DNA of 64,000 nucleotides from Eutreptiella sp. 'Long Island Sound 2002' (GCA_964036045.1 OZ038378.1:3720001-3784000), one strand, 5' to 3'. Counted from the first letter of the stretch, positions 18,063 to 58,082 are shown. Program-made: numbers and translations. The notes: generated by a model from the sequence alone, not told the origin.

Positions 18063-18779
18063 CCTCTAATCTACACCCCTTGATTGCGGAAAAATGTTGT
18101 TCTCGTCCCCAGGTATGTTATACCTTTTTGAAATGTACGTGTCAAGGGTTTTCCAACGCCTTTTGAGTTGGGGTCTATCTCACCGATATCTCAAAATGCC
18201 AGGCTGTACGGAAAAAAAAACATTTTGGTTTTGGCCCGGTTCTGCGGGCTACACCGCAGATGCAATTTGTACCCGGGATGGTCCAGGGAAGTATCTCTAA
18301 CATATCGTTGTTCTGCTAACAAAAAATGCCTTGTCCCCAAAACATGCAGTTTTTCATGCCCGATCCATTGGTGAGTGTCTCGCCCTCTAACTCCACAAGC
18401 TATAGCAACACACCACTGTCACCCTTGTCCCCCTGCTTTGCCGGCTGAAGTTTGTTTGTGTGTGAGGCAACCCCTCACTGTTCTCTTCGGGGCGGGATTT
18501 GTCTACTTGCGCCCGAGTAAAGGCCGCTGGGCCTAGCGCAGTTGGTGTATATACCCTTTACGGGAACACCACAGCCAGCCCGAGTAATGCCATGCATATG
18601 GCTTGTGCATTTACACTTGCAGGGGGGTCCTTAAAGGACGAGAATTTTTTTTTTGTTAAGGACCCCCCTTAAGGCCAGCCACTAGAGGCCTTTTTGCCCC
18701 GGCCCAACGTGGGCCATGTCTATCCCCCCCTTTTGGGGATCGCCGAGAAAGCAGTAGTTACGTAGCAATTCCGCCCTCT

Positions 18780-19365
18780 TTTGGGCGCCACTTGTGATTT
18801 TGCCCCCCGCTCTGAGGCGGAGGGGATCCCCGAGGCCGCAGGGGTTACGTAGCCACCTTGCCCACAAGTGGGCCACTTCTGATTCTGCCCCCCGCTCTGA
18901 AGCGGAGGGGATCCCCGAGGCGGCAGGGGTTACGTAGCCACCTTGCCCACAAGTGGGCCACTTCTGATTCTGCCCCCCGCTCTGAAGCGGAGGGGATCCC
19001 CGAGGCGGCAGGGGTTACGTAGCCACCTTGCCCACAAGTGGGCCACTTCTGATTTTGCCCCCCGCTCTGAAGCGGTGGGGATCCCCGAGACGGCAGGGGT
19101 TGCGTAGCCACCTTGCCCACAAGTGGGCCACTTCTGATTTTGCCCCCCGCTCTGAAGTGGTGGGGATCCCCGAGGCGGCAGGGGTTACGTAGCCACCTTG
19201 CCCACAAGTGGGCCACTTCTGATTTTGCCCCCCGCTCTGAAGCGGTGGGGATCCCCGAGGCGGCAGGGGTTACGTAGCCACCTTGCCCACAAGTGGGCCA
19301 CTTCTGATTTTGCCCCCCGCTCTGAAGCGGTGGGGATCCCCGCGACGGCAGGGGTTGCGTAGCAC
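18780..19365 (+). repeat. 85-bp tandem minisatellite inside hAT-like copy 1 (about 6-7 units)
   Basis: Unit GGGGTTACGTAGCCACCTTGCCCACAAGTGGGCCACTTCTGATT...CCCCGAGGCGGCA recurs at 18841 and 18926, etc. Confidence 0.9.
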
Positions 19366-19369
19366 CACC

Positions 19370-20211
19370 ATGCGTCATGTCATTCCAAGGGGGTGGGAGG
19401 AATCGTTGGGTGTTGACGTAGGGAGTAACCTCATCAAGGGTAGCCGGATGAAGTTTTTTCGCAGTTTGATTGAAGACGTGCAGACACGATTCAAGGGAAC
19501 TGAGTGGGATGGTAGTGCTAAAGTGGAGGATTGGGTTGAGGCAAGCTCGTGTTCGTGTGAGAGAGTGTTTAGCTACGTGACGGCTACGGACTTTGGCCAA
19601 AGCACGGAGCGCATGTGTGAGACGCCGTGGGTAAGGTGCAATGGGGAGGCATCAGAGGATTGGGGGCCCTTTGAGGTTTTTGATGATCTTCGCACCCCTT
19701 TCCGCCCGCCCAAACGGAAGCAAGGGCATGCAATTGAGGGGGAAGATGGCGGTTTGCTTGGGTTTGCGGCTTTCAAGGATTTGGTAGTTTCTTTGGAAGA
19801 GGATGGTCAGGCAGAGGTTCAGTTGGACATTCAAGATTTGTGGGTCGTCCCCAAGAGGGCGACACGTCACGCCGGCATTGGCGATGTGTATGGGGTTGGG
19901 TTGGAGGGTGAGGACGAAGACAGTGAGGACGAGGATTTGGAGCAGCCAGGTGAAGTTGCCAGTAGCTCCTCTTCTGACCTTGTAACCCGTCAGCTGTCCC
20001 CTCCACCTCTTCTAACCCTGCCGCGCAGTTGGTGTTTGCGTATGATGTGGATGAGGCGGTGTTGAAGGCAATGGAGAGGGGGAGGTTGCATGAGTGGACT
20101 AAAGTTGAGTTTAAGGCCATTTGTAGGAAGCATGGTTTGAGTGTCAGCGGGGGGAAGGGTGAGCTTATGGAGCGTGTCAGGGTGCACTTCCAGAGGTTGT
20201 ACCAGCTGTAG
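19370..20211 (+). pseudogene. Transposase C-terminal remnant spliced (44-nt intron 19950-19993) to a C-terminal SAP domain
   Basis: VEASSCSCERVFSYV motif, NLS-like PKRKQ and an acidic tract. Removing GTGAAG...CCCGTCAG restores frame into EFKAICRKHGLSVSGGKGELMERVRVHF (SAP consensus). Confidence 0.7.
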
Positions 20212-22632
20212 GGAGTTTGTTATCAGCTGTGCCACCGGCGATGGAACATTCGGGTGGTCGAACGCTGCATCACTGGATTTGATCAGAAAAAAGTATTGCT
20301 CTTGTTCATGTTGAATTGTGCAGGGTGTGAGGTAGGGTTCTGATGCTATCATGCAACACATGTGGGGCTAGGATCATATGGTTGTGTGCTTATACAAATT
20401 TGGGGCTAGGGACTCATGGTTGAACAGTTGGGAACACCAGGGTGAAGACATGTACTGTCGGTGGGCTCTTTTGAAAATACCAGGTTCTGGAACAACTTTT
20501 TTTTTTTTTTTTTTTTTGCGTTAAGGACCCCCCTGGTGATCATTGAATTCCTGTCTACGCCAGAGTCGACGGCGGGGTACCTCTCGGACGTGTTTATGGC
20601 TTTGGAGTTGGTCGTCGTTGCGCGCTTCCACGTGCATCACACCTGCCACAACCACACTCACTGAAAGTCAGAGAGCCCACAGACATGGCCTGTGGGGTGG
20701 AAGTACAGGGACCACAACCCTCCACAAGAAGGTGATCCATCACGGGACGCCCAAAGTGCCGGCCGCTGCCGCCCTGTCTCCTCAGCAGGTATAATCTGTG
20801 CACACTGTTCAGTCATGTATTGGCTGCTATTGCTTACTCTTTTCAGGTTTTTGCCATATGGTGTGGCGGTAGCCTACCGCACTAGAGAGCCCTCTGGTCA
20901 ACGCATATGAGCTCTGGGTCTTTGCCTTGTGCCCCGCTTTGTGGGGATCCACTGTATCATATGTTTGGAGTCGCCCAATATTCAAGAAGAGTCTTGAGTA
21001 CTCTGCGAACTGCGAGTCAGTCAAAAAAAAAAAAAAGAAACACAAACAAACCAGCTATACTAGACAACCAAGCACCAAACACGCCACCACTACAACGAGG
21101 TAGCACAGACCTTGCGCCTGACACGACGCTACACAACCCACCTCAATCACGTGCACCGCATCACACACGCACATTGCGACACATCACACTGCTGTTCCAG
21201 CTGCATAAAGCATGGCTCAACCGCCTGTTTCTCGAGTCCCAGGCATACGCCGCACAACGGGAAGAGTACGACAATGCGACCAGGCCGGTACAACAAAGGT
21301 GGGGGGCACACTGGGCTTTGCACAGACAGTGGCGATCAGGGGCTTGGCAGAGGCCATCACGATGTCGGCACGGGCGTTGCGGCCGCATGAACCCAGCCCC
21401 ACCCCACTCTCCCTGTGGCGGTGCGTGTTTTCGTGGATGCTGCCAGGCACGACTTGACACCTGGCCGGCCCCCGTCATACTCGGCCAGGGTTGTAGGGTT
21501 ACTGCAGTGCAAAGTCTCCAACCAGATCACACCGGGGTCCAAAGCCCCTAGTCGTTCAATCATGGCTTGTGGACACCAGAGTAATGCAGCAAAGCCAGCC
21601 CATGGAGCTCGGTTACCATGAGCTGCAACGCTGAATGCAGCGACCCATGCTTTGTAATGTTGCAATGCTTTGAATGGCAATGATTTGCTACCTTGAATGC
21701 AGTATCCCTAACACAGGCCTGCAAGTTGCACCGTTTGCCGTTTTGGCCAGTTTCGGGCGGCTGCATTGTAAGCGACGGGGGACGGAGCTGGCACCCCCGG
21801 CCCACGGGCACCGGTGCAATGGTGCGTGGAGTCAACCCCCACCGCAATGTGGTGTTTGGGGCGTTGAAAGGGGGGCTTAGCCCCCTGCACACCCACACTG
21901 CCACCGCCCGCGGCCTATGGACCAACACATTGTTGTGGCCAACCGATCAGAAGTTTGCCCTCTATGCCTGTGGGTTGTTCACAGGGGTGAGGGGTGGCAC
22001 GTCAACATCCCGTTTCCTTGCGAACGGGGGTTGCAGTCATTAACTGAACTTCACAGGACCATTATTTGTACTGCAGTTTGATTTTTGTTTGTGTGGTGGG
22101 CCTTAGCCTCCCACCCACCCATTGCAGATGTCTGCTATGGGATGGCCATGGGAGATGTCTGCTATGCATTGATTGAATGATTTGTGCTGTTTGCTTCGTA
22201 TCACTGCAACAGAAAGGCGGGGCCCTTCCTGGTCCCCAGTCTCAAGGCCTGTCCTTTGCACTACTTTGCATTGCACAGTACCCCACATGCTCTTGTGTAC
22301 CATGCCCTCATCCGGCGATGCGCCATCCTTGCTCAGAGGACCTCGGAATGCCGGCCTGTCACCCCTCTCTCTGATGGCTATCGGCGTTGCATTGTCCATG
22401 GCGACGTTTGTGGTCGAAGTTGACAGGTTTGCATTCGGTCTTTACACCCTGGCCCCACTGCAGACGAGCAAAACGGGAGGGGAGCAATGGGTACAGGACC
22501 GCAGTGGGGAGAGCGAGGCCTGCTCCATGCTGAATGAAGAGAATGAGGAGTTACTTCAACCCGCAACAGCAGTTAGCCAACGACCAGAGGGGGATACTGG
22601 ACAACCACTATGCCACCTTTTGGAGGGACGAC

Positions 22633-22853: not shown

Positions 22854-23075
22854 GGGACGACCCCCCGAACACTCCTGCACCCACTACAGCCGCCAGCATA
22901 GCACAAGCGCCCATGGCACTCTCTAGGCCAAGGCCGCGGCAGCAAAGGCACGCGGCCATCCCGACTGTGGCGGAATGGCCGCGGAAGCGAATGACTTTGT
23001 CTTGGAAACTCCCTCGGGTGTTGCCCACTACCTCCAGGCATTGAAGGTGGAGATGCAAGGGTTTGTCTCGGCCCC

Positions 23076-25001
23076 ATGGGACGGCTGGGCACGCTGAGAT
23101 GCGACGGTCGCAGCGGCATGCAGTGGACCTCTTGGAGGCGATTGTCCTGGAGCGAGGCCGTGCAGCCTGCCAAGCGGAGAAATGAGGGGTGGGATTGTTC
23201 GCCGACCTATCTCTATCGCACCACTCTTTCACCAGGGGTCTCAATGGGACCCGGGCCACTAACCGCCCCCTCCCCCCCCCCCCCCCGCCTGTTTCCCCGG
23301 GACCAAGATCTGACATCTCCATACCTAAACCTTGCGCTGGTCCTCAACACAAAGGAAACACAACTCAAGCAAGTCATCTGGCCAGGTGAAGGCCCTCTCT
23401 GTGCAACCATTGCAGTCAGCAGTACGGCAATCCGTGAAGGAGTTGAAACCTTCAATCTATTAAAGGCACAGTACCCGATAGTGGACCTGCGAATGATCAT
23501 CTTCACCCCGCACGAGAAAAAATTGCACGAGGGTGCAGACTTTCTAGCAGACACTTTGAATTTTGGCATTGACGCGGTCTCGCTTCTGAATCGCTCTCTC
23601 AGTCTGCAAGGCGACAACGGCAAGTTACATGCGTGGGTCGTCACATCGCAACATACAACCAGGCTCAATCCGTTCGTCGGTAGGCCGGTCAGGAAAATGA
23701 TAACTCTGCTACCTCCTGGATCTGATCCGCTGAAACTGTTTGTCACTGAAGACAAACAAACTGGCAAACGTGCCATCGCTATCAACAACAAGTGGCTTGA
23801 CCAGATGGTCAAAGACCTTGGCATCTCAGAAGGACATCTTGCAATATGTCCAGGGCCACACCCAACCCAGACAAGTTGGGTAATCTTCCACCCAGCACAT
23901 GCCAGCAAGGAGGCCTTGGAGAAAGTCGAAACCGCTTACTTCCAGAAGGAAAACTTTGCCATGGTACCATGGGAAGTGCAACAAGGAGAACTTGGCCCCT
24001 GCGAAATCATTGCTGAAGCTTGGATCACTAAAAAGATGCAATCGCACCAGACCCTCACCACCTTTTGGGCAACAGTACACTACCACCTCCAAACGGTGGT
24101 AGATAAACTTCAGCAAGCTCCCAGACTGCAGTATGAGGCCACCAATAAACTGCGCCTGGGGTTCCCCAAAAAAGCAGACGCCGAAATATTCATGGCCACG
24201 ACACTACAAACGTTGAAATCCCTTGGCATGGCCTTCAAAACCGAAGGCACAAAGTCGGATTACTGGGATGCTGATGGCGCAAAATCAACTACAACATCCC
24301 GCTCTAATAGATCATGGGCCACACAGGGAACGAAAGAATCATCCTGTGATGAAGATCGCATCGTGCTGGTCGACTTCCCAGAGTATCTCTCACCAACGGA
24401 GGTGCTCAACATTATGAAAGGAGTATTCCAAAAGGCTGACATCCCGCTGCAGGATACCAAAATTGAGCTGCAGCGACTCAAATGGTCAATGGGCAGCCTG
24501 CGGAAACCAAACTGGCTTCTCAAAGCCCCTGCAGTGAGGAAGCTTGCTGGTGCGACAGTCACAATAGCGTCCCACTCAGGCTCACACAGTGCAGCTACCG
24601 TCCGGTCATATGCTGACTGGGACAAAGCATTCAAGGCATGGCAGAACAGGGACAAGATGCAAACTGATTCGGCGAGGCCGAACCAGGCGAAACAAACACC
24701 ATCCTCCCTGTTACGAAACGTTCCATCCCCTGCCCCCCCACCTGTCCCTGCTCCTGTATCTGTTGGCATGCCCCCTCCTGCACTCCCCAACATCCTGCCC
24801 CCCCCCCAAAATAGCATGTTTTACCAGCCCCAAGCACCCCTCAATGCGCAACAACTGAATTACCTGCAAGCTGTACTGACGCAGTCAACACACCCAACAC
24901 AATCGCAGTCTACATCGTCGATGATGCATCTTGACATAGCTAGTGTACGCGGCAAAAGGGCACGAGATGACTCTCAAAATGACGAACAATCCCAGTTCTA
25001 G
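23076..25001 (+). CDS. LINE ORF1 (gag-like, possible RRM-like segments, Pro/Gln-rich tail)
   Basis: 641-codon intronless ORF ending 25 nt before the likely ORF2 ATG. Assigned by position; no clear domain motif. Confidence 0.75.
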   Translation: MGRLGTLRCDGRSGMQWTSWRRLSWSEAVQPAKRRNEGWDCSPTYLYRTTLSPGVSMGPGPLTAPSPPPPRLFPRDQDLTSPYLNLALVLNTKETQLKQVIWPGEGPLCATIAVSSTAIREGVETFNLLKAQYPIVDLRMIIFTPHEKKLHEGADFLADTLNFGIDAVSLLNRSLSLQGDNGKLHAWVVTSQHTTRLNPFVGRPVRKMITLLPPGSDPLKLFVTEDKQTGKRAIAINNKWLDQMVKDLGISEGHLAICPGPHPTQTSWVIFHPAHASKEALEKVETAYFQKENFAMVPWEVQQGELGPCEIIAEAWITKKMQSHQTLTTFWATVHYHLQTVVDKLQQAPRLQYEATNKLRLGFPKKADAEIFMATTLQTLKSLGMAFKTEGTKSDYWDADGAKSTTTSRSNRSWATQGTKESSCDEDRIVLVDFPEYLSPTEVLNIMKGVFQKADIPLQDTKIELQRLKWSMGSLRKPNWLLKAPAVRKLAGATVTIASHSGSHSAATVRSYADWDKAFKAWQNRDKMQTDSARPNQAKQTPSSLLRNVPSPAPPPVPAPVSVGMPPPALPNILPPPQNSMFYQPQAPLNAQQLNYLQAVLTQSTHPTQSQSTSSMMHLDIASVRGKRARDDSQNDEQSQF

Positions 25002-25026
25002 GGGGTCCAACCCCCAAACACTGAAT

Positions 25027-28000
25027 ATGGCCCAACAACCCCTCCCCCTTGGGGGAGACCTCCCCTTTGCAACCCTCAACTGCAATGGCCTGTTGACAGA
25101 GGTTCCCAATGGATCCCGCACAACCGCAAGGATCAACATTGTCCTTAAACTTTTTAAAAAGTTGGATGTCCAGTTTTTTGCCATCCAAGAGCCCCACATT
25201 GCCTTAGACACGGACAGCTATCATCGCAACGTTGAAAAGCTCAACCAATATGCAGACCAGGCAGGCTATGACTATATCCTCCAAAAAACCACCATGGGAT
25301 TGCGTGGAGGAGTGGCGCTCTTTTGGAAAAAACAATGGCGCTGCACCTGGTCAATCTCCTTCTCCCCCCGAGTGCTAGTGGCTAACCTACTGAGTGACTC
25401 AGGGCTAGAACTGTCAATAATTGCTGCACACTTTCACCACCAACCCAAAGCCAGGCAGAGCCAATGGGAGATACTTTCCCAGGACCTGCCGACCCTTCCC
25501 CTCCATCCCCATGTCATCATGCTGGCAGACCACAACTCCGTGATCACGCCAGGAGTGGATTCCGAAGTGGTGACCCTGCATGATCAAATCCCCCCCGCAA
25601 TACACGCCAGGGACTCTGAAACTGAACTGGTCTCCCAGCTGCACCTGGAAGATGCATGGCATGTGGTTTACGAACCGTCAGGGGACCCAGACTCACCCCA
25701 CACCCCGAAAGGCTGGACCTGGGGATTTCACACTGACTCTGACCGCAAAGTAGTGTTGCACCCCGACCTTCCCCCGCCCGCGGCAGACAGCACAGAGCCA
25801 GCAGACACCCCAGTGAAGCCGCACCGTAGGAGAATTGACCGAATCCATGTTTCTCAACCCATCTCCCATATGATTACCAAAGTATACACCCAATTCTTAG
25901 CTTTCTCGGATCACAAAGCAGTGATTGCCGTCCTCTCCCCCCCGGCATCACACAATCTGCGGCCGAGGCCAAGGCTCCCGACAACTTTCCTCACGGATGA
26001 GGCAGCCAGGGAAACACTCTCGCGACGCCTCCAGGCAATACAAGTGCCAGGGGAAGGGTGGTGGGACGAGGCATGTTCAGCCATGAAACACGTCGCCCTG
26101 TCGTTTGAAAGATCCCACAACCCCACGGGGCTCCAAGAAGTCCAGGCACTCCTCATGGACTGCTCAAAGGATTTCACTTCGGCGGAAGCCCGAGAGTTTC
26201 TAAAGTCAAGAGGACTAACCCCATCATCCACAGCACAGGCGTATGGAATGCTCATGTCCCTGGCGGAACGAGAGGCGATTGATCGGAGTGGGCTCAAGGT
26301 CTTGAACTCCCTAAAATCGGTCCTGCGCGAAGAGCCAACCAGCCCACACAGCAAGCAGCAGCGAAAGCAAGAAATAGCCAGACTGACACGTGAGTTGCAA
26401 GCAAAACGTCGCCTGGCCACGCTGAGAAACAAACAAGGGCAACTACTGAACCACCCACTACAGATTGCATGGGCCCTCCAAGAACATTGGCAGTCCATCA
26501 TGCGTCCAGGAACACAAACAGTGGCACAGTGTATGGAATACCTCAAATCCCTGCCCCTCCCTCGCTCCTTCTCCCAAGCAGCCCCCCTCCTCCTTAAACC
26601 GGCATCACATGCATTGGTCCTCACTGCCCTGGAACGGATGAAACCGAGGTCGTCTCCAGGGATGGATGGGATACCAGCGGAGGTCTTCATGGCCTACCCG
26701 GATATCCTAGTCCCCAAAATGCACGACTCCCTGCTTCGCTTTATCCAGAACGGGAAAATACATGAGCCCTGGGCCATAGGGCTTTTAACACCCATCCCTA
26801 AAGAGCAAGGGTCCTGCTCTGTCAACTCCCTGAGGCCCCTGTGCCTCCAAAATGTACTCTACAAATGGATTTCAGCATGCCTCCTCCTGATGATCGAAGA
26901 CCTCCTAATGCTGGTGACCCCCCCAGAACAAAAAGCGTTTATTAAGGGTCGATTCATTTTCGACCACATCTGGGATGCACGGGGGGCATGGGATGCAATG
27001 GACCAGGGACTTTTCATCTCCCTGGATTTTTCAAAGGCATTTGACTCAGTCCATCATAACTACTTCATTGCCTACTTCCTGTTTGTAGGCATCCCTCTTC
27101 CCCTCATATCCCTGATCATGTCCCTCCTACGCTCCCCCTTCTTGTTTGTTGTCGGAAAGGGAATTGTACAGGGAGTAGAAGTAATTCCCCAGTCAGGAGT
27201 CCGCCAAGGGGATCCGCTGTCCCCAGCACTGTTTGTAATGGTAACTTCAGTTTTAATCAAAGTCATTCAATCAGTCTCACCACACATCAAGGTCCTGTTT
27301 TATGCTGATGACCTCCTGCTGTACCTCCCAGTCCCCCCCCCCCTGGTGCTTCGTCTCCTCCCACGCATCTTAGCAGTCCTGAACAGCTACGGAATTTTTG
27401 TGGGGCTGACCTTGAACTTGGAAAAATCAGCTCTGCTCTTGAAAGGTCCCTGGTCTGATGACTCCATTGCACAGCTACAGACGCATGGGATCCCTGTGAA
27501 GCAAAAAACCAAATACCTGGGCAATTTGATTGGGCATGTCACACCGGAGGAAGCCTACGCCCCCCTGCTTGCACGCGCACTCAAACGAGCACAGTTTATG
27601 AAGGCCCTACCCCTCACGCTGGACGAGAGGGTAGCCCTGCTCCAAGAGTGGGTGCTCCCTCTATTGATCTACCCGGCGCGCGCATACTTCCCCACCACCT
27701 CAGTTATTGCCCAGCTGAGCAGCATCTACAAACAGGCACTCAACATCAGCAGCTGGGGACTCACATTGCCCATACTACAGCTGCCCCGAAACAAAGGGGG
27801 AGCACTTCTGCCCCAACCGCATATATATCTGCTGTGGCAGCATGCCACCCCTTTCTTTCAAGCAATCTCTGAAATTCTGAGTGTCCCGGAGCTGTCTAGA
27901 AACCATTTTTTACAGTGGACCAGCCAAATGGGGATCTCACTTAACCTCCAACACCTGCCCTGGCTCCAGCTGGGGCCGATACCGTGGAAGACTTATCCCT

Positions 28001-30129
28001 TTCTGGGCACCTCGTGCAAGGCATTTTCCCTCCTGCGCAAACATGCACCAGTACCAGTCCCGACTCTGGATCAGTATGTCAAATTGCCTGCATGGCACTC
28101 AGCATTATTCCGCGACACCAAAGCCAACTCCTACTACTCCCCTTCCCTGCTACGCAAAGGTGTCACCACCCTGGGACAACTACTTGAAATCCCAGAGTAT
28201 TCTGCCCTCCTGCCCCCCACTTGGGCGCCGGTTTACAAAGCGTGCATAACAGAAATCCAAGCAGCAGCGCCCCACACGAAATTAAAGGAAGCAAGCCCCA
28301 TGTTTTGGTCAGAATGGAACAAACGGCACATGTTGCATTACCTAATGTCCTTGACCCCTGAACCGCCCAGACAGACGGCGGAAACCTGGCAAGCATGGGC
28401 GAAGTTGCGTCTCCCTCCCAGAGACACCCAGTTCATCCAACTAGCGCTCTGGCACAAACTCACGGTGGGCACCAGGCTGGCCAGTTGGCAGCCAAATGGC
28501 ACTGCATGCCCACTACACCCAGGGGTTCAAGAAACAATCAAGCATGCCACCCTGCACTGTAAATTTCTGCAACCTGCATTTTTCATTGCCCAACAATGTG
28601 TGGGACCTGCAGCGCTAGCGGACGGCTCCACAGCAGACCCAGAAGCAATCTTATGGGATCAACCTGCACTCTCTGTCTCATCCCCCCTAGGGCTGCTCTA
28701 CTGGTCTGCGGTCAGGGCAAACTGGATGGTCCGCAGCAGATGCAAATTTCATCACCCAACCTTCCAACCCCCGTGGCAACAGTTTCTGAAACAGTGGAGA
28801 GCCAACCTCAGCGATTGGGTGGACCACCCCTTCCCCTCCTTCCCCAAATCAGAAACACAGTTGTTCTTGCAGGCACTCGATTCTCTGAGTGATCCGAACA
28901 CGCTCACGATCCAGCACCCGAGGGTCCACACAGCACACAACTCCTCCCTCCCCCCCCCCACACTGGTAGCCCCGGCACGCAAGAAACGGAGAAAAGAAAC
29001 ACACAAACAAGAACTCTGTGAGTACTATGAACAAATAATCCAGCGGTATGTCGAAGCAGGGTGGGAAGTCATATATCCCGACGGATCATCGGAGGACCAT
29101 GAGGTAGTAGGACGAGTGGGAGGGTATGGCGTCTCCTTTGGGGATTCCAGGGATACAGCCGAACCAATTCCAGTGAGTGAACCCCAAACCAACAACAGAG
29201 GGGAACTGAGGGCAGCCCTGCGCGCGCTGCAAGCACGGTCACCAGACAAACCTGTCCTGATCTGCCCTGACTCCTTACTCGTTGTAGACGGTGTCCACGG
29301 CAAGGCCCAAAAGTGGCGCAGGCACAAGTGGACAGGATCCGCGGGCCCGGTCAGCCACGTGGACCTGTGGACCCAGGTACTGGACCTAATTGAATCAGCA
29401 CACTCCCCCACCCACTGGATGCACATCCCCTCCCACATAGGAATCAAAGGCAATACCAGAGCGGATCATCTGGCGGATGTCGGTCGGCGAAAATCCCCCC
29501 TCCTTTTTGGACACGTCTCCGTCTCGCAAACAGGGCAACAACAGCCACCAGACAATGATGATGTACAATCCTTAGCGGACCTACTGGAGGAAGAGGCCCC
29601 AGAGCTTGACGAGCCCCCCCTCCCAGAGTCGCAGCTCACACCACTGCGGCACACAGCGGAAGAGTACAGCACCCCCCCACCCCCCCCCAGAACCCCTCGC
29701 CGACCGACACCGTCACAGGACATTGAAGATTGCACCCCGGCCAGGAACCCCAAATACCCGAAGAGATTCACACCACACACCGTCGCCTACACGCCACTCT
29801 CCAACCTCCGAGCCCGCCTCCCTCACACCTCATTGGCCACACCGAGCACAGTGCACTGCATGCACACACCGTGGGAGGCGCTGGAACGCAGAACTACATT
29901 TCACACCCCCCAACCACCATCACCCATGTCGCCACGTGTAGCAGCAAATCTGTTGGCAGAACTGCAGCTGGTTGAAATGGACTGGGAGCAGGGACCAAGC
30001 CAGGCAGACACCGAAAGCATGCCGTCCTCCCACACCTCATCAAGGCACACATCGCCAGCGTCACGCATGTCTGACGACGCCTCCACACTGTCCTGCAGCA
30101 CCATGTGTTCTCACTGCACCACTCCATAA
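25027..30129 (+). CDS. LINE ORF2: AP endonuclease, reverse transcriptase, zinc knuckle, RNase H
   Basis: APE: ATLNCNGL, IQEPH, LADHNS, RIDRIHV, FSDHKAV. RT: PGMDG, LRPLCL, LDFSKAFDSV, GVRQGDPLSPALF, YADD. CPLH...ETIKHATLHC knuckle. RNase H: IYPDGS, QTNNRGEL, CPDS, HIPSHIGIKGNTRADHLA. Confidence 0.95.
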   Translation: MAQQPLPLGGDLPFATLNCNGLLTEVPNGSRTTARINIVLKLFKKLDVQFFAIQEPHIALDTDSYHRNVEKLNQYADQAGYDYILQKTTMGLRGGVALFWKKQWRCTWSISFSPRVLVANLLSDSGLELSIIAAHFHHQPKARQSQWEILSQDLPTLPLHPHVIMLADHNSVITPGVDSEVVTLHDQIPPAIHARDSETELVSQLHLEDAWHVVYEPSGDPDSPHTPKGWTWGFHTDSDRKVVLHPDLPPPAADSTEPADTPVKPHRRRIDRIHVSQPISHMITKVYTQFLAFSDHKAVIAVLSPPASHNLRPRPRLPTTFLTDEAARETLSRRLQAIQVPGEGWWDEACSAMKHVALSFERSHNPTGLQEVQALLMDCSKDFTSAEAREFLKSRGLTPSSTAQAYGMLMSLAEREAIDRSGLKVLNSLKSVLREEPTSPHSKQQRKQEIARLTRELQAKRRLATLRNKQGQLLNHPLQIAWALQEHWQSIMRPGTQTVAQCMEYLKSLPLPRSFSQAAPLLLKPASHALVLTALERMKPRSSPGMDGIPAEVFMAYPDILVPKMHDSLLRFIQNGKIHEPWAIGLLTPIPKEQGSCSVNSLRPLCLQNVLYKWISACLLLMIEDLLMLVTPPEQKAFIKGRFIFDHIWDARGAWDAMDQGLFISLDFSKAFDSVHHNYFIAYFLFVGIPLPLISLIMSLLRSPFLFVVGKGIVQGVEVIPQSGVRQGDPLSPALFVMVTSVLIKVIQSVSPHIKVLFYADDLLLYLPVPPPLVLRLLPRILAVLNSYGIFVGLTLNLEKSALLLKGPWSDDSIAQLQTHGIPVKQKTKYLGNLIGHVTPEEAYAPLLARALKRAQFMKALPLTLDERVALLQEWVLPLLIYPARAYFPTTSVIAQLSSIYKQALNISSWGLTLPILQLPRNKGGALLPQPHIYLLWQHATPFFQAISEILSVPELSRNHFLQWTSQMGISLNLQHLPWLQLGPIPWKTYPFLGTSCKAFSLLRKHAPVPVPTLDQYVKLPAWHSALFRDTKANSYYSPSLLRKGVTTLGQLLEIPEYSALLPPTWAPVYKACITEIQAAAPHTKLKEASPMFWSEWNKRHMLHYLMSLTPEPPRQTAETWQAWAKLRLPPRDTQFIQLALWHKLTVGTRLASWQPNGTACPLHPGVQETIKHATLHCKFLQPAFFIAQQCVGPAALADGSTADPEAILWDQPALSVSSPLGLLYWSAVRANWMVRSRCKFHHPTFQPPWQQFLKQWRANLSDWVDHPFPSFPKSETQLFLQALDSLSDPNTLTIQHPRVHTAHNSSLPPPTLVAPARKKRRKETHKQELCEYYEQIIQRYVEAGWEVIYPDGSSEDHEVVGRVGGYGVSFGDSRDTAEPIPVSEPQTNNRGELRAALRALQARSPDKPVLICPDSLLVVDGVHGKAQKWRRHKWTGSAGPVSHVDLWTQVLDLIESAHSPTHWMHIPSHIGIKGNTRADHLADVGRRKSPLLFGHVSVSQTGQQQPPDNDDVQSLADLLEEEAPELDEPPLPESQLTPLRHTAEEYSTPPPPPRTPRRPTPSQDIEDCTPARNPKYPKRFTPHTVAYTPLSNLRARLPHTSLATPSTVHCMHTPWEALERRTTFHTPQPPSPMSPRVAANLLAELQLVEMDWEQGPSQADTESMPSSHTSSRHTSPASRMSDDASTLSCSTMCSHCTTP

Positions 30130-35049: not shown

Positions 35050-35410
35050 GTGGGTGGGTATGGGGCCACTGTCCTTGGGGAATGGTGCACCAGTTCCGCC
35101 CTACCCACGTGCATGAAACAAACTATCAACAGAGCGGAAATCTTGGCGGTTACCGCTGTGATACGCCGGTTTGGTGGCACTTCACGCAAGATTGGCGTTG
35201 CCATGGATTCTGAATTCGTATATGCAGGACTCCAAAGAGTGGCGGCCAAGTGGGAATTAAATAGGTGGGTATCCTCTGCGAGCCCAATGTTAAATGTCAA
35301 TTTATGGATTGAGGCTCATTTTTGTTCAGGCAGTTTTTCACTGGTTGAAAATCCCTAGCCATGCTGGGCTGCATGGTACCGATGAAACGGACAGACTAGC
35401 AAAATAAGGG
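35050..35410 (+). pseudogene. Degenerate retroelement RNase H remnant
   Basis: GGYG, QTINRAEILA, MDSEFV, NVNLW, PSHAGLHGTDETDRLAK, with frame disruption. Confidence 0.7.
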
Positions 35411-40218: not shown

Positions 40219-40227
40219 GTATGCGCG

Positions 40228-40568: not shown

Positions 40569-40933
40569 TGTCATCTCTGGGGGGGGGGGGCTTCTCTGGG
40601 GCATTTGAGCACACGGAGCCAGATTGGATTCTGTGCAACGCACCTGCGATCACCACTGCCCTTTCCCAGAAGAGGCCCCTGGGGGGGGGCTGGCCAGACC
40701 ATAATCCACAGTGATCATCCTCGCAAGTGTTCGGCCCAGTGCTAGGGCAAGACTTCGGAGCGGTGACATCCTCCCGCAAGGCAGATCTCCACACATGGCC
40801 TGGGACAGGGATGCATTAGAACGGCTGGGGACCCCAGGAGGAGCCCCCCCCTCCCCTTTGACCCCCCCCCCCCCCTTCTCCCCCCCTCCTCGCCTTCCAG
40901 GGTTTCGGGCTGACAGGACATTGCACACCAATA

Positions 40934-42290: not shown

Positions 42291-42530
42291 TAGGGGGGTC
42301 CTTAAGAAGCCTGATTTTTTTTTGCTAAGGACCGCCCTTAAGAACCGCCCCCAGGGACCACCAACCACCAACCGCCGCCAACCGCCACCAACCGCCACCA
42401 ACGGCCAACCGCCAACCGCCGACGTTTGAACTAGAGAAGGTCCCATGACCAGGACGCAGAGAGCGTCCCTGTCAGCGTTCGTTTATGCTGGTGTTACGAA
42501 GGCTTTTTTTCCCCCTTGAGGACCCCCCTC
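42291..42530 (+). mobile_element. Older MITE of the GGGGGGTCCTTAA family
   Basis: AGGGGGGTCCTTAA / TTGAGGACCCCCCT ends; decayed 8-bp TSD ACAGTTGG vs GCAGTGGG; internal CCAACCGCC repeats. Confidence 0.65.
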
Positions 42531-42685
42531 GCAGTGGGCACCCAAATTGGCTACTCCCTAGCGCCGCGAAGTGGTGTGGGTTGAGGGGTCTAGAAGGGAC
42601 GGGGGGGGGGGTCAAGCCTGACGCGTAAGCGCCCCCGTCGCATCTGTCTTGGTGTGGCTTCTTTCATTTCATGTGGTATCCACAG

Positions 42686-48311: not shown

Positions 48312-49510
48312 TCCTCCAATCTACACCCCTCTCCCAGCTCTAGGTGGCTCCACCACACGGCTCTAAGGTACGTGCGAAGGACACAAAGTGGTGCATACAT
48401 GTGGTCAAAGGGGCTAAGCTGGGTCAAAACGGGCTCAAAATGGGCTCAAAACACTTGTTTGAGCATCCCAAATGGTCCGGGATCACTTTTGGAAAAACGC
48501 GTTTTTGACCCATTTTTGACCCACTTTTGGTCCCAAAATGGCCCATTTTCAAGGCATTTTGGGATTTTCCATGGGCCAAAACCCGTCGCCACGGGCTCAA
48601 AATGGGCTAAAACCACTTGTTTGAGCATCATAAATGGTCCAGGATCATTTGTGGAAAAACGCGTTTTTGACCCATTTTTGACCCAATGTTGGTCCCAAAA
48701 CGGCCCATTTTCAAGGCATTTTGGGATTTTCCATGGCCCAAAACGCGCCACCACGGGCTCAAAACGGCCGAAAAACACTTGTTTGAGCATCCCAAGTGGT
48801 GCAGGAACAACTTTGGAAAAAAATGATTTTTTTCGCCCTGGGGACCCTGGTGGACCCACCGTTGGCCCCCACTGTGCGTGGGCTGGCCGGCCCTCCGGCT
48901 GCACCAAGTGACCACTGGTACGGGGATCTACGTGTCTCGTTGGGCGAGTCTGAGGCTTGGAAACCACAAAATGTGGGGGGTTGCGGGTGGACTAGGTGCC
49001 CTCGGAATTCGTTTTTGAGCCACGTAGCCCAAGATACGGCCCGTTCTTGGTTTCGGGGTGCTGGTGCACATTGCGCAGTTTTTGGGGCTTTTTGGCGCCT
49101 TTTTGGGCCGTTTCTTGGACATATTGTGGAGTTAGAGGGCACCAAAGGTCCCTTGGTCGCGAGAAAGTCAAGCCGCACGTGCAGTGTAACAGCCGTTTGC
49201 CTTCGTTTGGCTGTTTTGAACCCTTACTAGGGCTGTTTTGGGCGAAAAATGGCTGTTTTTGGCCCAAAACTGCGCAGATTTGGGAGGGCACCTCCCGACT
49301 TGGCGCCCCCGCCCCGGACCGCCACCGGTGAGTTTTTGGCTCAAAACTTGGATTTGGCAAGGGCACCACCTAGGCTCTAGGATGGCTAAAGTAGAGTTAG
49401 GCCCGAGGCGTTGGGAAGGTGCAATGGCTGAAACGGCACGGAGACGTGTTGCTTGTTGCTTGTTGCTTGTTGTTAGCTAAATTTAAGGGGAGAGGGGTGT
49501 AGTAATATAT
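48312..49510 (-). mobile_element. TACACCCCTCTCCCC-terminal element, inverted copy, beside an (AT)n tract
   Basis: Begins TCCTCCAATCTACACCCCTCTCCC and ends GGGGAGAGGGGTGTAGTAATATAT; reverse complement of 16936-18008. Confidence 0.85.
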
Positions 49511-50276: not shown

Positions 50277-53103
50277 TTCAATAATGATGATAAAACATTA
50301 AAAAAAGAATTGACCCGACCCAACCCCCAGCCCCCCTGCTCACCATAGCTGCAGGTACCCACCCTGGGAGAGGTAATTTTTTTGGAAATTTTTTTGACCC
50401 CAACATGCATACCTCAAAATGATCAGCGCGACATGGCGATCATTTTAAAATATGTATGCTGGGGCCCCCTGGACCCCTCCCCCCCCGGCCGCCCCCTGGA
50501 CCCCCCCCCCCCCCCTCCGGGGCCTTCGGCTACCACAACCCTGTTGGGGTCCGGCACTTGAACAGGTACCCCCCCCCCATGTTTACATGCTTTTTGGATT
50601 TGCAGGTTTGGCAATGTGTAACACAACGAAATTTACATTTTGTCCACTGCTGCACGGAGCCAAAGGCCTTCACAGCCCTGCACAGCACATGGCCTTCGAC
50701 AGGGCTGAGCTATGCACCGGGGCCCAGGCCAACATATGGTCCAGGTAATCGCAGTATACATTGTGCATGACCCCTCTCGTCCCAAGCTGCTGCATTGTGC
50801 AACACAAAGGTACGCAAGTAAATTTTGTTGTGCCACAGGCAGAAGTGGGACCCAGACATATAAGAGACGAGGGGTTACCAGTGACTGTGGCTGCTTCAGA
50901 GGGCAGCATGATTGCCTGCCTGCCTGTCTGACTGTCTGAAAGATACCATAGGCCGAGTGTATTTGTACATATTTACATTTGTGTGGCCAGTCTTGACGAA
51001 GGTTTGGGTAGCACCAGCTGCTGCCATGTGCCCGCCTGTCTGATTTCGCGCCTCAGTACATATCCATGGCTCCATTGTACTCCACCGGAGCACGCGGCAT
51101 AGTCCCAGTATTTGTGTTTTGTGTGTTTTGTGATTTCTGTTGCTTTTTGTTGGGCAGTGGACCAGATCAGGCCGTGTTGGCCATGGGCTGGGGCCTGGCC
51201 CATTGCGTATCCGGGACACAGCTGATGCAACAATTGTCACAAGGCCACAGCCCACCCCCAAAACAATGCTTGTCAACTCTGGTATTCTGTCCTGGACGAT
51301 TGCTATCTGTTCTCTGGCTATTTGTCTTCGCATTGTGGAGATCTTGCAGCATTGGCAGGTGTTCAGAGCAGCATTCTTAACACCAGGGCATTGGATTCAG
51401 AATGTCTGTAAGCTGCGACATGAGGCATGAAGGTGGTGGCAACCATGGCAACCGATGGATATTCATGTCAGTGCCAGGTTGTTGGCTGGGCCCCTCAGAT
51501 GTGTGTTTGGGTGTCAAGCTCTGTGTTTTGTTGGCAGACTTCAACAGGAGTCACAGCCGGGCGTTGCGCACTCCCCAAACCGGTTGCACTGCAGCGGGAA
51601 TGTTTCGACAGGGATCCTCCTGCAGTTAGAGCTGACCATGTCCCGCGCTCCGGCTTCAGCACCCTCGTTAGATCCGCCAGACAGAGGTTCTGAAAAACCT
51701 CCTGGCTTCAGCGTTCAGCTGATTTTGTCACTCTTGTACCACGTGCAACGGCCCCAAGAGACCAGCTGTGTCATGCTGCAGCCTGGGTGGCATGTGTGAC
51801 GCATCGAAACGTTCTCACACCAGTATTTGTACAAATTTTACTCCGCAAAAATGACGCTTAGTTTCGCCATCTGCTGCATCCGCTTTCTACATATGTGCAA
51901 CTGGTTACTGCACGCCAACACATCGCATCGTTATTTTCCTGCTGTCCAATTTGCTATTGAAGACCGTTAGGCGCGTGTGTGTGGGGGGGGGGAGGGTGCG
52001 TGTGTTTGGGTCACAGGGATGCTCTGATTGCGCACTGGGTTTCACTCTCCAGGGAATGCCTATCTGCTCCAGATGTAGCCGGCAGATCCCTGCCCCTATA
52101 ACAGCTGGTAGCCGAAAGGCCTACACCACATTCTTATAGGCCCTGAGCCTCTGGTCTGGAATGCTGCATATGCATGTTTGCTGGACGTTGCAAGGGTTTT
52201 CTGAGTACCCCCCATCCATGTATCTGTTCAATAATGATGATAAAACATTAAAAAAAGAATTGACCTGACCCAACCCCCAGCCCCCCTGCTCACCATAGCT
52301 GCAGGTACCCACCCTGGGAGAGGTAATTTTTTTGGAAATTTTTTTGACCCCAACATGCATACCTCAAAATGATCAGCGCGACATGGCGATCATTTTAAAA
52401 TATGTATGCTGGGGCCCCCTGGACCCCTCCCCCCCGGCCGCCCCCTGGACCCCCCCCCCCCCCCTCCGGGGCCTTCGGCTACCACAACCCTGTTGGGGTC
52501 CGGCACTTGAACAGGTACCCCCCCCCATGTTTATATGCTTTTTGGATTTGCAGGTTTGGCAATGTGTAACACAACGAAATTTACATTTTGTCCACTGCTG
52601 CACGGAGCCAAAGGCCTTCACAGCCCTGCACAGCACATGGCCTTCGACAGGGCTGAGCTATGCACCGGGGCCCAGGGCATTGGATTCAGAATGTCTGTAA
52701 GCCGCGACAGGAGGCATGGATATTCTATCAGTGCCAGGTTGTTGGCTGGGCCCCTCAGATGTGTGTTTGGGTGTGCAACTGGTTACTGCACGCCAACACA
52801 TCGCATCGTTATTTTCCTGCTGTCCAATTTGCTATTGAAGACCGTTAGGCGCGTGTGTGTGTGTGGGGGGGGGGTACGTGTGTTTGGGTCACAGGGATGC
52901 TCTGATTGCGCACTGGGTTTCACTCTCCAGGGAATGCCTATCTGCTCCAGATGTAGCCGGCAGATCCCTGCCCCTATAACAGCTGGTAGCCGAAAGGCCT
53001 ACACCACATTCTTGCAGGCCCTGAGCCTCTGGTCTGGAATGCTGCATATGCATGTTTGCTGGACGTTGCAAGGGTTTTCTGAGTACCCCCCATCCATGTA
53101 TCT
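50277..53103 (+). repeat. Tandem duplication: 50277-52225 followed by a shortened copy 52227-53103
   Basis: Near-identical blocks; the second copy lacks ~50731-51385 and ~51514-51893. Confidence 0.85.
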
Positions 53104-53186: not shown

Positions 53187-54360
53187 ATGTTCAGTACCTG
53201 CTACGGCGGGGTATCAAGGAGGGCTTCCCCCTTTCCCCCTCCTTGTTTATCCTGGTCTATGAGGCATTTCACGCTGACCAGGGAATTCCCCACCCGCTTC
53301 TTTGTAAATGTCGATGATACCGCTGTAGGCGCACCAGATGAAGCCACCCTGCTCAGGGTATTCCACTGCACCCATAGGTATTCCGCTAGGGTTCTCTCCT
53401 ATCACGATTGCTGGACATCAGTGGTACTCCAATGGGAAACGAAATCGGAGACTACCTGGTTCAGTGACGGTAGCAAACTGGAAGTCCCTTAACTGGAGGG
53501 ACGGAGGGACAGGTAGACAGGGTGGGTGTTGCGCTGTCCTGTGGGCCACTCATTATTATTGCGCGCGTAACAGGACTGCGGACCTCATACAGCGGTGAGC
53601 TGCAGGGTGCAGTACTTGTAACAGCACCAGACCTCACTGAACCTGGTGACACACTGACCATGGACAACCAGGCAGTTGTATGCTGGGCACCCAGACCCCT
53701 CCCCCCAACAGGAGTGTGTGGATATGGACCTACGGCAACAGGTTACCCGGCACCTGGAAACCCAGTCCATGCCTTTTTCTTGGGTCCCCAGTGATTGCCA
53801 CCTGTCAGATGCCAAGAGTCCAGAGGATTGTGAGGTGATACTGCGAAATGATGAGGTAGACAGATGGGCAAGGATAGCTATACCCCTTCCATTGCCACTA
53901 TGTGAGCCTACCGACCCATCTGCCATTGTAATCTGTGGTGGGATAGTGTCCGCACCAGCAAAGAAATGCGTCATTCAACGCCGCCAAACATTCGGATTTC
54001 CAAACGTGCACTGGGTCTCTTGGCTGCCTTTGAAGGGCACTGGGCTCATGTTGTGGCTCCGCTGGCTGTGGGAAATGTGTGATGGGTGGGATGTGCACCC
54101 CCTTGGGAAAAGACAGTCAGCCTGTGCCCACTGTGTGGTACATGCCATAGAAGCACAGTTCATCTGCGACTCAGTCAATGTCCAGCCTGGAAGCTGCTCT
54201 TCCAGAAAGCCGGGCTCAGTAACTGCGGGAGTTGCACTGAATATGCCATTTCCTGGTGTCATCAGGCGGCGCATGATGACGTTGTACATATCTCCCGCTT
54301 GCGGATCCCCTATCCTTTGTAGATGGTCTACCTTGACCACTGCGACCGGCTCCATATGAA
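53187..54360 (+). pseudogene. Degenerate non-LTR retroelement fragment with RNase H
   Basis: WFSDGS, SYSGELQG, DNQAVV, FSWVPS, NDEVDRWA and downstream CPLC...H...C, with stops and frameshifts. Confidence 0.75.
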
Positions 54361-56023
54361 CATGTTGCACATCATCAGTACCATTTGCTGCTATTGGTGA
54401 CATCCCTCTGTGGCGTGTTGCCATGTCCCCTCAATACACTGATTCCTTTGTTGGATCATCCAAGATGCAGAACAAACCAATGTTTTGCCAAAAACATAAG
54501 TTTTGCATTCCGGTTCAGGTCTGTTTCTATTTTATTTGGTGTTCATGGACTGACCGGAGACATTTACACACAGTGACAGAGTGCTGACTGTATTGGCTTT
54601 GCAGGGAGGAGGGTGGAGACGCAAAACCTCAAGGGGATAGCAAGGAGAGTGTTGGGAGCTTTCAGGCCGCTTTTGGTATGGTTTTAGGGATGTGAATATA
54701 TAGCATGAATTTTTGGTTTTCCAAATGTTGATCTCCATTCACCCGTGGGCTGTTATTTTTGTGAGGAATTGAAAATCGTAGCTACAGTGGAAGAGGAAGC
54801 AATGTGGATGTGTATAATATCCAACTATGCGTGGGCCAAATCGTAGGAGTGCATCGTAGGGATTGCAACTATCCGAGCATGGGTTAGAGATAAACTAGAA
54901 AATAGTGGCCGTCTTGTCCCACTGCTCTTTTCATGGTACAGCTCGTGATGTCAAGGTCATCGGAGGGGGGTATCTATGGGGGCATCACACAGTAGTTTGG
55001 TCGCCTCAATGAAACAAGGAGGGAGGCCAAAAATTTCCAATAGTTGCTAGTGCGGTGGCGATCTGCAGCTTTATTGAAGCACTTCATATTGCATTATTTG
55101 CAATCTCTACTTTGTATCATCATTACTGGGTGATTGGTATCACTAGTCCACCGGCTATCACAGGCCGCAAAACTAAAACAAATGTCATTTGACATTCAGT
55201 TTACCGCAAACTCACTGTATTTTACGGTTGCACCGATTGTCTTGTTACAAGCTGCTCTAGCAATTTTTCAAACCTTTGCATTGAAGATTTCTAAAATGTC
55301 GGGCAATGAAGAGATGAAGGTTTGTAAATTCTTCATTGGTGTTAGAATCTGTTTTTTGATGAAAATTGTTTGCTACTGTTGCACAGTTATACAACGGACC
55401 CAAAGTTGAATTGATCCAGTGGTACATTGTAATAAGGCCAATAGACCATCTACAAAATGGCGGGCCACATGTTCACTAACCATGGGCAGATGTGCGGTAA
55501 CCGTCCCACGACACGCCTCCGCCTAGCCCTTCACCTCATGCCTATGTAGTCGCCGAGGAATCTCGGGTTGAAAATCTCACGAATTTTTTTTTGGAGAAAA
55601 TGTTGACGCAAAGATTCAAAAACTCGGCTGAGCAACCTGCAACTATGGTGGGACGTAGATTGCCGCAACTCTGAGAATTGACCATCAGCGCATGTTAAAA
55701 GGCAAATCACATCCCACCAATCATTTGATGTCGAAGGAATGACATTTCGGAACCATTTGGTTCAAAGACTACGAAGATACACACTTTATTGGTATAGTCT
55801 TTTTGAACGCAGATACATACATGGTCCCTGCTTGCCTATCATGGGGGACAAGCCCCCCCCCCTTTTTTTTGCTTTGTTTGGATTAGAAAGGTAGGTAGGT
55901 AGGTCTCTTCGGGACGGGGTAGCCTTCATGGGAAAGTCTTATCTATGGAGCTTTGCCTCGCTCACTCACGGCCCTGTCTGAACGTCCCCCCCCCCGCCGC
56001 CATGGGAGAAGGGCTTCTACGCC

Positions 56024-57602
56024 CAGGGGGGTCCTTAAGGACGAGACTTTTTTTTTTGGTTAAGGACCCCCCTTAAGGACCGCCCCTAGAGTCCTTTTTG
56101 CCCCGGCCCAACGTGGGCCATGTCTATCCCCCCATTTTGGGGATCGCCGAGAAAGCAGGAGTTGCGTAGCAATTCCGCCCTCTTTTGGGCGCCACTTGTG
56201 ATTCTGCCCCCCGCTCTGAAGCGGTGGGGGTCCCCGAGACGGCAGGGGTTACGTAGCCACCTTGCCCACAAGTGGGCCACTTCTGATTCTGCCCCCCGCT
56301 CTGAAGTGGTGGGGATCCCTGAGGCGGCAGGGGTTACGTAGCCACCTTGCCCACAAGTGGGCCACTTCTGATTTTGCCCCCCGCTCTGAAGCGGTGGGGA
56401 TCCCCGAGGCGGCAGGGGTTGCGTAGCCACCTTGCCCACAAGTGGGCCACTTCTGATTTTGCCCCCCGCTCTGAAGTGGTGGGGATCCCCGAGGCGGCAG
56501 GGGTTACGTAGCCACCTTGCCCACAAGTGGGCCACTTCTGATTCTGGCCCCCGCTCTGAAGCGGTGGGGATCCCCGAGACGGCAGGGGTTACGTAGCCAC
56601 CTTGCCCACAAGTGGGCCACTTCTGATTGTGGGGCAAAGGGGGGAAGTTTTGTTTCTCCCCCCGCACTGGTGTGTGTTGGGTGGAAGCGATGTTCCACGA
56701 GCTGGATATTGTGCTAGAGAATATGCCTGCTGCCGAGTGCATTAATCATGAGGCTGACCTGGGGCGTAGGGAGAAGGCCCAGGGACGCAAACGGAAGCAA
56801 GGGCATGCGGTTGAGGTGGAAGATGGTGGTTTGCTTGGGTTTGCTGCGTTCAAGGATTTGCCAATTTCTTTGGAAGAGGATGGTCAGGCAGAGGTTCAAT
56901 TGGACATTCAAGATTTGTGGGTTGTCCCCAAGAGGGCAACACGTCACGCCGACATTGGCGATGTGTATGGGGTTGGGTTGGAGGGTGAGGACGAAGACAG
57001 TGAGGACGAGGATTTGGAGCAGCCAGGTGAAGTTGCCAGTAGCTCCTCTTCTGACCTTGTAACCCGTCAGCTGTCCCCTCTACCTCTTCTAACCCTGCCG
57101 CGCAGTTGGTGTTTGCATACGATGTGGATGAGGCGGTGTTGAAGGCAATGGAGAGGGGGAAATTGCATGAGTGGACTAAAGTTGAGTTTAAGGCCATTTC
57201 TAGGAAGCATGGTTTGAGTGTCAGCGGGGGGAAGGGTGAGCTTATGGAGCGTGTAAGGGTGCACTTCCAGAGGTTGTACTAGCTGTAGGGTGTTTGTTAT
57301 CAGCTGTGCCACCGGCGATGGAACATTCGGGTGGTCGAACGCTGCATCACTGGATTTGATTGAAAAAAGCATTGCTCTTGTTCATGTTGAATTGTGCAGG
57401 GTGTGAGGTAGGGTTCTGATGCTATCATGCAACACATGTGGGGCTAGGATCATATGGTTGTGTGCTTATACAAATTTGGGGCTAGGGACTCATGGTTGAA
57501 CAGTTGGGAACACCGGGGTGAAGGCATGTACTGTCCGCGGGCTCTTTTGAAAATACCAGGTTCTGAAATAACTTTTTTTTTTTTGCGTTAAGGACCCCCC
57601 TG
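56024..57602 (+). mobile_element. hAT-like element copy 2 (85-bp minisatellite plus transposase-SAP remnant, different internal deletion)
   Basis: TIRs CAGGGGGGTCCTTAA / TTAAGGACCCCCCTG; minisatellite ~56180-56630; same 44-nt intron (57027-57070) and SAP exon as copy 1. Confidence 0.85.
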
Positions 57603-58082
57603 ACACTTGCAATGCGACAGGGCCTGGGTCAGGGGCAGGGTGGTACAGCGAGGACAGCGAAGACAGTGCGCAGCATACATGCAAAATGAGTGCCCTGGCG
57701 TGACACCTGTCAACACTCGTGTGACACTTCCCTCCAAACGAGAGTGAGCCACCAATTTCCAGAATGCAGGTGTGGTACCAATCAAAGGCAGAAATGCAGC
57801 TGCAGCAGGACCACAGACAAGAAGGCAGAGGATCTGGGGAGACCGCTGTGTAGTGCACACTCAACCTGCAAACATGACAGTGTCAACAGTGGGGCCAAGT
57901 AGTACCCGAGCATCCACTCAGGACTCCTTTAGCGCTGATGTTGTAGGCCTCTTGGTGATGAATGTGTTGCATGTCCATACATACTCTACCATCAAGGAGT
58001 ACGCCTCGCTTGTCCTCGCTTGCAGACACTCAATGTGTGCGTCACACTGCCATAGCTTCTTATGGTCGGTTGCTGGGACAAT

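Follow-up and report, generated by a model that had tools for sequence, protein, structure and literature searches.

Did two small transposable elements carry 35 kb of DNA between them to a new place in a protist genome? The question is raised by a gap-free stretch of 64,000 nucleotides with 0 N bases (the window), which corresponds to positions 3,720,001-3,784,000 of contig 1 in the 2.28-Gb eukaryotic assembly (G000) of Eutreptiella sp. 'Long Island Sound 2002'. Two elements of one family, E1 and E2, bound a block of 38,983 bp at window positions 18620-57602. The original prediction, made from the window alone, held that the left end of E1 and the right end of E2 had moved the whole block, including a LINE and a host gene. 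The block is a real, well-bounded composite insertion, most likely a macrotransposon, and macrotransposition is in our judgement its best and a fairly probable explanation. For the fuller claim of a natural macrotransposition in a protist, in which a pair of defective hAT-like elements moved 35 kb, among it a unique metalloprotease-like gene, we see about an even chance. The parts of the block and its flanks are the following, in window coordinates.

18410-18619, + strand: left outer flank (P); forms the left half of a low-copy repeat unit of ~294 bp; terminates in ACACTTG (18613-18619) at E1
18620-20535, + strand: E1, a complete non-autonomous hAT-like element of 1916 bp with terminal inverted repeats (TIRs) of 15 bp and seven 85-bp subterminal repeats
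20536-20705, + strand: E1's inner flank, which opens with GTGATCAT and goes on as native low-copy sequence
20536-56023, no strand assigned: inter-element segment of 35,488 bp, mostly repeats, both ends single-copy at 100% identity in the assembly
55889-56023, - strand: inner flank of E2, a fragment of repeat R (~135 of ~420 bp) that ends in TCTACGCC exactly at E2
56024-57602, + strand: E2, a complete non-autonomous element of E1's family, 1579 bp, without a duplication of its own
57603-57686, + strand: right outer flank (S); forms the right half of the ~294-bp unit shared with P; begins with ACACTTGC

The bounding elements and their target-site duplications

E1 and E2 lie in direct orientation on the + strand, each with the 5′ end CAGGGGGGTCCTTAA and a 3′ end that is its exact reverse complement. 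The 15-bp TIRs are perfect and identical between the two elements, and the coordinates and sequences originally reported for the pair and its common TIR agree with our recheck. The TIR pattern, allowing up to two mismatches, is found eight times in the window against an expectation of 0.23. Both elements start with a 5′ hairpin, in which the TIR pairs with an inverted copy ~36 bp downstream; an array of 85-bp repeats comes next. The 3′ part contains the tail of an open reading frame (ORF) ending in a SAP domain (PF02037, E 7.7e-8), and a T-run ahead of the 3′ TIR. The transposase-like ORF tail of E1 is frameshifted, and a one-base deletion shared by E1 and E2 (window 19980-20030) shifts the frame just ahead of the SAP part. 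The frame is uninterrupted in longer copies, with 501 aa in L016:1791-3293(-) and 564 aa in L026:656-2347(+).

The common blocks of the two elements are 93.9% (5′) and 95.2% (3′) identical, and the longest run of identity is 144 bp. Segment 56620-56790 of E2 is missing from E1, and segment 19350-19700 of E1 is missing from E2; counterparts of both are present in longer copies, such as L019, L022, and L026. Because the identity is 94-95%, the differences are evenly spread, and the internal deletions differ, E1 and E2 are two independent elements rather than duplicates of one another. An origin of the pair as a single-element cointegrate or a tandem duplication is ruled out by their being different deletion derivatives with ~5% divergence. 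The family is abundant, with at least 3626 first-look candidates in the genome for a DNA query and 1282 for the protein tail. Its coding tail also lies within open frames of 820-900 aa at C14:36652983, C11:64538387, and C3:182839692 (C denotes contig), which are candidate autonomous elements. A second subfamily of the element has the TIR CAGGGCCGTCCTTAA.

Elements of the hAT superfamily have 8-bp target-site duplications and short TIRs starting with CAG or TAG (the YARNG rule), and a hAT transposase combines an RNase-H-like catalytic core with a hAT dimerisation domain at the C terminus. The perfect 15-bp TIRs of the family start with CAGGG and are accompanied by 8-bp duplications, perfect in nine of the 11 copies described below; by these sequence features the family would fit hAT. 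The longest ORFs (L026, 564 aa; L016, 501 aa) contain no Pfam hAT domain and match SAP only. A PDB sequence search and NCBIfam returned for the family protein only the SAP domain of Ku70, and among 1.84 billion protein representatives the only matches were short pieces of the family's own coding tail. All named neighbours in the ESM Atlas are hAT-derived (FAM200/ZBED5 RNase-like, DUF4371, Dimer_Tnp_hAT), with scores of 0.85-0.88 that have the standing of a lead. Read by eye, the motifs SDGAG...AAHCL and SCSCERVFS in the longer ORFs resemble hAT blocks. The AlphaFold model of the family protein is poor (pLDDT 50). The term hAT-like, used from the outset for these elements, fits the 8-bp duplication, the CAG termini, and the sequence motifs, and finds no counterpart in a Pfam hAT domain. 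Mutator elements have target-site duplications of 9-11 bp and long TIRs (~100-200 bp); membership in this group was rejected, since the duplications are exactly 8 bp with an unmatched ninth base and the TIR is 15 bp.

The duplication rule of the family was determined from 11 other complete copies, with both ends, from the same genome. This tally of duplication lengths, which had been proposed together with the original prediction, gave a perfect 8/8 duplication in nine copies, 6/8 in one, and none in one (L007). The ninth base never matches in the nine perfect duplications. The flanks of E1, TACACTTG (left) and GTGATCAT (right), are identical at 1/8 positions, and those of E2, TCTACGCC and ACACTTGC, at 2/8. 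Neither element therefore has a duplication of its own, as had been predicted. The lack of a duplication in both of two complete, neighbouring copies is unusual for the family, because nine of the 11 other copies have perfect ones. The outer flanks match instead: the predicted ACACTTG is present at 18613-18619 and 57603-57609, in register with the outer termini, and the chance of such a 7-mer match between left and right flanks, measured on random window positions, is ~1.4e-4. The match extends over 7 bp and reaches the full 8 bp (ACACTTGC) only if one C was lost at the left junction. Related MITEs (miniature inverted-repeat transposable elements) in the window had also been said to have 8-bp duplications. 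The length holds for the family copies, while the MITE at 42291-42530 has a degenerate duplication, ACAGTTGG / GCAGTGGG, that matches at 6/8 positions.

The exceptional copy L007 (G000:C4:156120377-156124845) contains an element at C4:156121877-156123462 that is 1586 bp long, has perfect TIRs, and is flanked by AGCAACGGT and CCGCAAAAAA, without a duplication. It could be the junction of another macrotransposon or of some other rearrangement.

The outer flanks in a paralogue on contig 13

The genome was searched with 400 bp from each outer side of the block. Window 18429-18590 (162 bp) matches C13:37802987-37803156(-) with 81% identity (E 3.9e-38), and window 57618-57686 (69 bp) matches C13:37802851-37802910(-), also with 81% identity (E 4.8e-10). 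The P-like and S-like parts on contig 13 are colinear, in the order and orientation of the window, and 76 bp apart. The spacing of the two matched parts in the window, after removal of 18620-57602, is 44 bp. A gapped alignment of the joined window flanks with C13:37802851-37803156 crosses the junction unbroken. Both modules are rare in the 2.28 Gb, where a reverse search located three copies of the left-flank-like module and about five of the right-flank-like one. Judged from these alignments, the colinear adjacency of the flanks on contig 13 cannot be chance. Since the flanks are adjacent in a paralogue built of rare modules, the ~294-bp unit of the window is interrupted by the whole 38,983-bp block. 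The GACGT-type micro- or minisatellite at C13:37802935-37802985 forms long arrays at many other loci, for example C6:28.585-28.589 Mb and C9:56.280-56.281 Mb.

These observations bear on the idea that the two elements never moved jointly. E1 and E2 would then be independent insertions whose duplications were lost by rearrangement or mutation, or the assembly would have misplaced the block, and both the 7-bp match and the adjacency in the paralogue would be coincidental. The idea gains from L007, which is also a complete copy without a duplication, from the match being 7 bp and not 8 bp, and from the microsatellite-like nature of the site in the paralogue. We nevertheless consider it improbable, as it needs several independent coincidences: the lack of a duplication in both neighbours, the 7-mer match, and the rare colinear modules on contig 13. 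The assembly-error variant is countered by the gap-free window and by the ~5% difference between E1 and E2, which a long-read assembler would not confuse.

Inner flanks, donor site, and mechanism

The sole 100% match in the assembly to each of the windows 20536-20935 and 55624-56023 is its own locus. Because both ends of the interior are single-copy, no donor or second copy of the cargo is kept in the assembly, which fits cut-and-paste movement.

The same finding weighs against an origin of the block by reversed-ends alternative transposition with re-replication, of the maize Ac/fAc type, in which the interior would be a fusion of the outer-side regions of the donor elements. Composite insertions arising from reversed-ends transposition are reported by Zhang et al. 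2014 (PMC4270019) and by Su et al. 2020. They resemble the block in outline: two ends from one family, in direct orientation, enclose foreign DNA, and one duplication is shared (PMC9910405; PMC4270019). They form by re-replication, the donor is kept, and the interior fuses the outer flanks. The interior ends would consequently be expected twice, yet those of the block are single-copy. No internal fusion junction was identified, though none was systematically searched for. We regard this route as distinctly improbable.

The flank of E2 inside the block consists of a fragment of the retroposon-like repeat R (~420 bp), with a (CCTA)n tail at 55889-55903, that is cut off exactly at E2. Other copies of R extend beyond the insertion point of E2, and the remainder of R was found nowhere in the window, the right-hand sides of E2 and E1 included. 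As identity among R copies is only ~70-78% and many of them diverge or break off at different points, the interruption of R at E2 is supportive rather than decisive. The right flank of E1 has one other copy in the genome, C11:61289484-61289595, with 71% identity. This paralogue on contig 11 extends leftward into sequence that is missing from the window.

The 8-mer TCTACGCC of the E2 flank (56016-56023) occurs again 18 bp to E1's right, at 20555-20562. An interior that was circularly permuted, or that integrated as a circle opened at TCTACGCC by reversed-ends reinsertion or a cointegrate-like event, would produce such an exact repeat, for which the post-hoc chance is ~0.01 (a rough estimate, not a computed value). 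At this place the paralogue on contig 11 has TTGAGTTCCTG-GCCACGCC-CGAC and the window TTGAATTCCTG-TCTACGCC-AGAG, so the 8-mer near E1 stands in native context on both sides, with no breakpoint at 20555-20562. The sequence that follows 20555-20562 differs from the remainder of R, and the 8-mer in the flank of E2 is part of R's own sequence. A one-element cointegrate is excluded, as E1 and E2 are different deletion derivatives. We therefore rejected the permutation, which is contradicted by the unbroken paralogue and which we hold to be highly improbable, and we ascribe the recurrence of TCTACGCC near E1 to coincidence because of the same native context.

The contig-11 locus (L072, G000:C11:61287984-61291095) has a further feature. 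The paralogue of the E1 flank, at 1501-1660 of L072, is followed 110 bp downstream by the 5′ end of a family copy, which runs from 1723 onward. This proximity is unexpected at a family density of roughly one copy per several hundred kb. L072 was also considered as a second paralogue that might establish the contiguity of the interior, on the strength of a 70% match to window 54006-54147; the matching sequence is a repeat with at least 148 copies and is uninformative. L072 and the window do not align between the two matching islands.

The main rival to macrotransposition is homologous recombination, which we keep as such because it can give the same end product from a pre-existing solo element. 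A solo element would already have resided at ACACTTGC, and the 35 kb with the second element would have entered by recombination within the element, either through integration of an excised one-element circle or through gap repair of a break in the resident element, copied from an ectopic two-element locus. Recombination would produce the identical end structure, with one duplication at the outer flanks and foreign inner flanks, and ectopic homology is plentiful in so abundant a family (at least 3626 first-look candidates). After gap repair or gene conversion the donor would still be in place, yet the cargo ends are single-copy. The circle route requires two rare recombination events and the survival of an acentric circle. 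E1 and E2 contain no long identical tract or obvious mosaic, and recombination accounts for the one-base deficit at the left junction no better. We judge recombination to be unlikely, and infer that a transposase was the agent.

We hypothesize that the macrotransposon originated at a donor locus where two independent non-autonomous members of the family lay ~35 kb apart in direct orientation. E1 would have been flanked there by a duplication of GTGATCAT, and E2 would have been inside a copy of R, flanked by a duplication of TCTACGCC. A transposase supplied in trans would have brought together E1's 5′ end and E2's 3′ end and excised the whole unit. The unit would then have been pasted into a small low-copy repeat at ...TTTACACTTGCAATG..., duplicating ACACTTGC, and one C at the left junction would since have been lost (CC to C) or miscalled. 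GTGATCAT and TCTACGCC at the inner junctions would be the orphan halves of the original duplications of E1 and E2. The intervening DNA, including the unique metalloprotease-like ORF, would have been carried along.

The block has several features of a macrotransposon: a direct pair of the same family, intact outer termini, and no duplication around either element, with outer flanks that are contiguous at an unoccupied site in a paralogue only. The joint move by the left end of E1 and the right end of E2, as first proposed, is supported by the adjacency in the paralogue, the 8-bp rule of the family, the single-copy inner flanks, and the interruption of R. The 7-bp flank match, a paralogue in place of an allele, the donor footprint, which was not found, and the recombination alternative leave the proposal short of established.

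Several observations weigh against macrotransposition. The outer match is 7 bp as compared to the family's 8 bp, and a 7-bp duplication is found in none of the other copies examined. The unoccupied site is a paralogue with 81% identity, not an allele, and a third copy, on contig 4, carries the two flank modules rearranged. The corresponding position on contig 13 is taken up by a short GACGT/GACTT microsatellite, and an alignment that retains both copies of ACACTTG scores 360.5, as compared to 350.5 for one that retains a single copy. Because the two-copy alignment scores slightly higher, part of the 7-bp repeat could predate the insertion. The R fragment could be just a 5′-truncated copy. The autonomous partner and the transposase activity are presumed. 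A donor locus, for which a search had been advised at the outset, was not found by an exact-pattern search of the genome for the footprint GTGATCAT-N(0-14)-TCTACGCC, which gave four other matches, none of them followed by the remainder of R; footprints with altered bases would escape such a search. Two of the four matches lie in apparent coding sequence.

Known macrotransposons and the cargo of the block

Ac/Ds macrotransposons of 10-28 kb excise and reinsert in maize (Wang et al. 2022, Sharma et al. 2022; PMC9910405), and are also reported in Huang and Dooner 2008, as cited in 10.1101/082677. The block resembles them in being bounded by a direct pair of elements from one family (here hAT-like), in the probable joint use of one element's 5′ end and the other's 3′ end with tens of kb in between, and in the lack of a duplication around either element; a single duplication would likewise be shared by its outer junctions. 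It differs from them in the shorter shared flank (7 bp) and larger size (39 kb). Movement in maize was observed genetically, with footprints and donor sites, whereas the Eutreptiella locus presents the end product alone.

A natural, gene-carrying case is the Tam3L macrotransposon that gave rise to the White Cap (Wc) locus of maize (Tan et al., 10.1101/082677). The block is likewise natural and is judged by the same criteria: a bounding element without an 8-bp duplication, sides that are non-contiguous in the reference, a shared outer duplication (7 bp in the block), and carried host genes (in the block, one host-gene-like ORF). Reference genomes contain both the empty target and the progenitor locus of Tam3L, its 8-bp duplication is perfect, and the donor is retained. 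In contrast, the empty site of the block is seen only through a diverged paralogue, and its donor was not found.

In bacterial composite transposons, two insertion sequence (IS) copies flank the cargo; these prokaryotic units are often replicative and recur as families. The block resembles them in that two copies of a small element would mobilise the DNA between them, and differs in being single-copy and eukaryotic.

Macrotransposition is well documented experimentally in maize, while natural fixed examples are few, the Wc locus being the best known. We know of no report of macrotransposition outside plants and insects, and our literature search found no report from protists, including euglenid-type ones. 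The Eutreptiella block would be a new example of a known phenomenon and leaves the known mechanism of macrotransposition unchanged. A protist case would show that ordinary cut-and-paste families move tens of kb of host DNA in a large repeat-rich genome. If the reading is correct, pairs drawn from a family of thousands of copies would generally drive the relocation of genes and the rearrangement of segments in this 2.3-Gb genome, and L007 could be another macrotransposon junction. The locus can be tested at four junctions, and an 8-bp target as well as two orphan duplications are predicted for it.

The 35,488-bp interior consists mostly of repeats, including several beyond the features listed here.

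23076-30129, + strand: long interspersed nuclear element (LINE) with two intact ORFs, of 641 aa and of 1728 aa with RVT_1, zf-RVT, and RNase_H domains
35050-35358: RNase H fragment
37502-39328, - strand: inverted block of 85-bp satellite, 1.8 kb, ~78% identical to the family satellite, with no recognisable TIRs
39669-40235, + strand: metalloprotease-like ORF, unique, 188 aa, with the zinc-metallopeptidase motif HELGH (HExxH)
42291-42530, + strand: MITE, 240 bp, with related TIRs TAGGGGGGTCCTTAA and a degenerate 8-bp duplication
42649-44715, + strand: Thr/Pro/Ser-rich open frame, 688 aa, built on 12-nt repeats

The 188-aa ORF at 39669-40235 is the only host-gene-like cargo. It matches Reprolysin_3 with E 3.5e-4 and 21.5 bits, below the cutoff of 22.4. 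The ORF is single-copy, and its one relative, with 33% identity, lies on contig 14 within an open frame of 725 aa. The 688-aa Thr/Pro/Ser-rich frame has no Pfam match, and its region is open in several frames on both strands. The host gene of the original prediction, a secreted protease-mucin gene, corresponds to two ORFs 2.4 kb apart with the MITE between them; neither a single gene nor its secretion is supported. The inverted satellite block at 37502-39328 adjoins the metalloprotease-like ORF, and an 11-bp minisatellite of ~45 units (40145-40635) overlaps its end.

The predicted LINE is present in the block, with intact ORFs; it looks young and potentially active. The LINE may have inserted after the block had moved.

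Direct repeats with 95-99% identity at 50277-53071, with spacings of 878 and ~1950 bp (families D13, D17, and D20), resemble a recent local duplication in the cargo. Inverted repeats of 148-276 bp with 80-82% identity connect 14511-17807, outside and to the left of the block, with 48676-49358 inside it, and probably belong to another repeat family.

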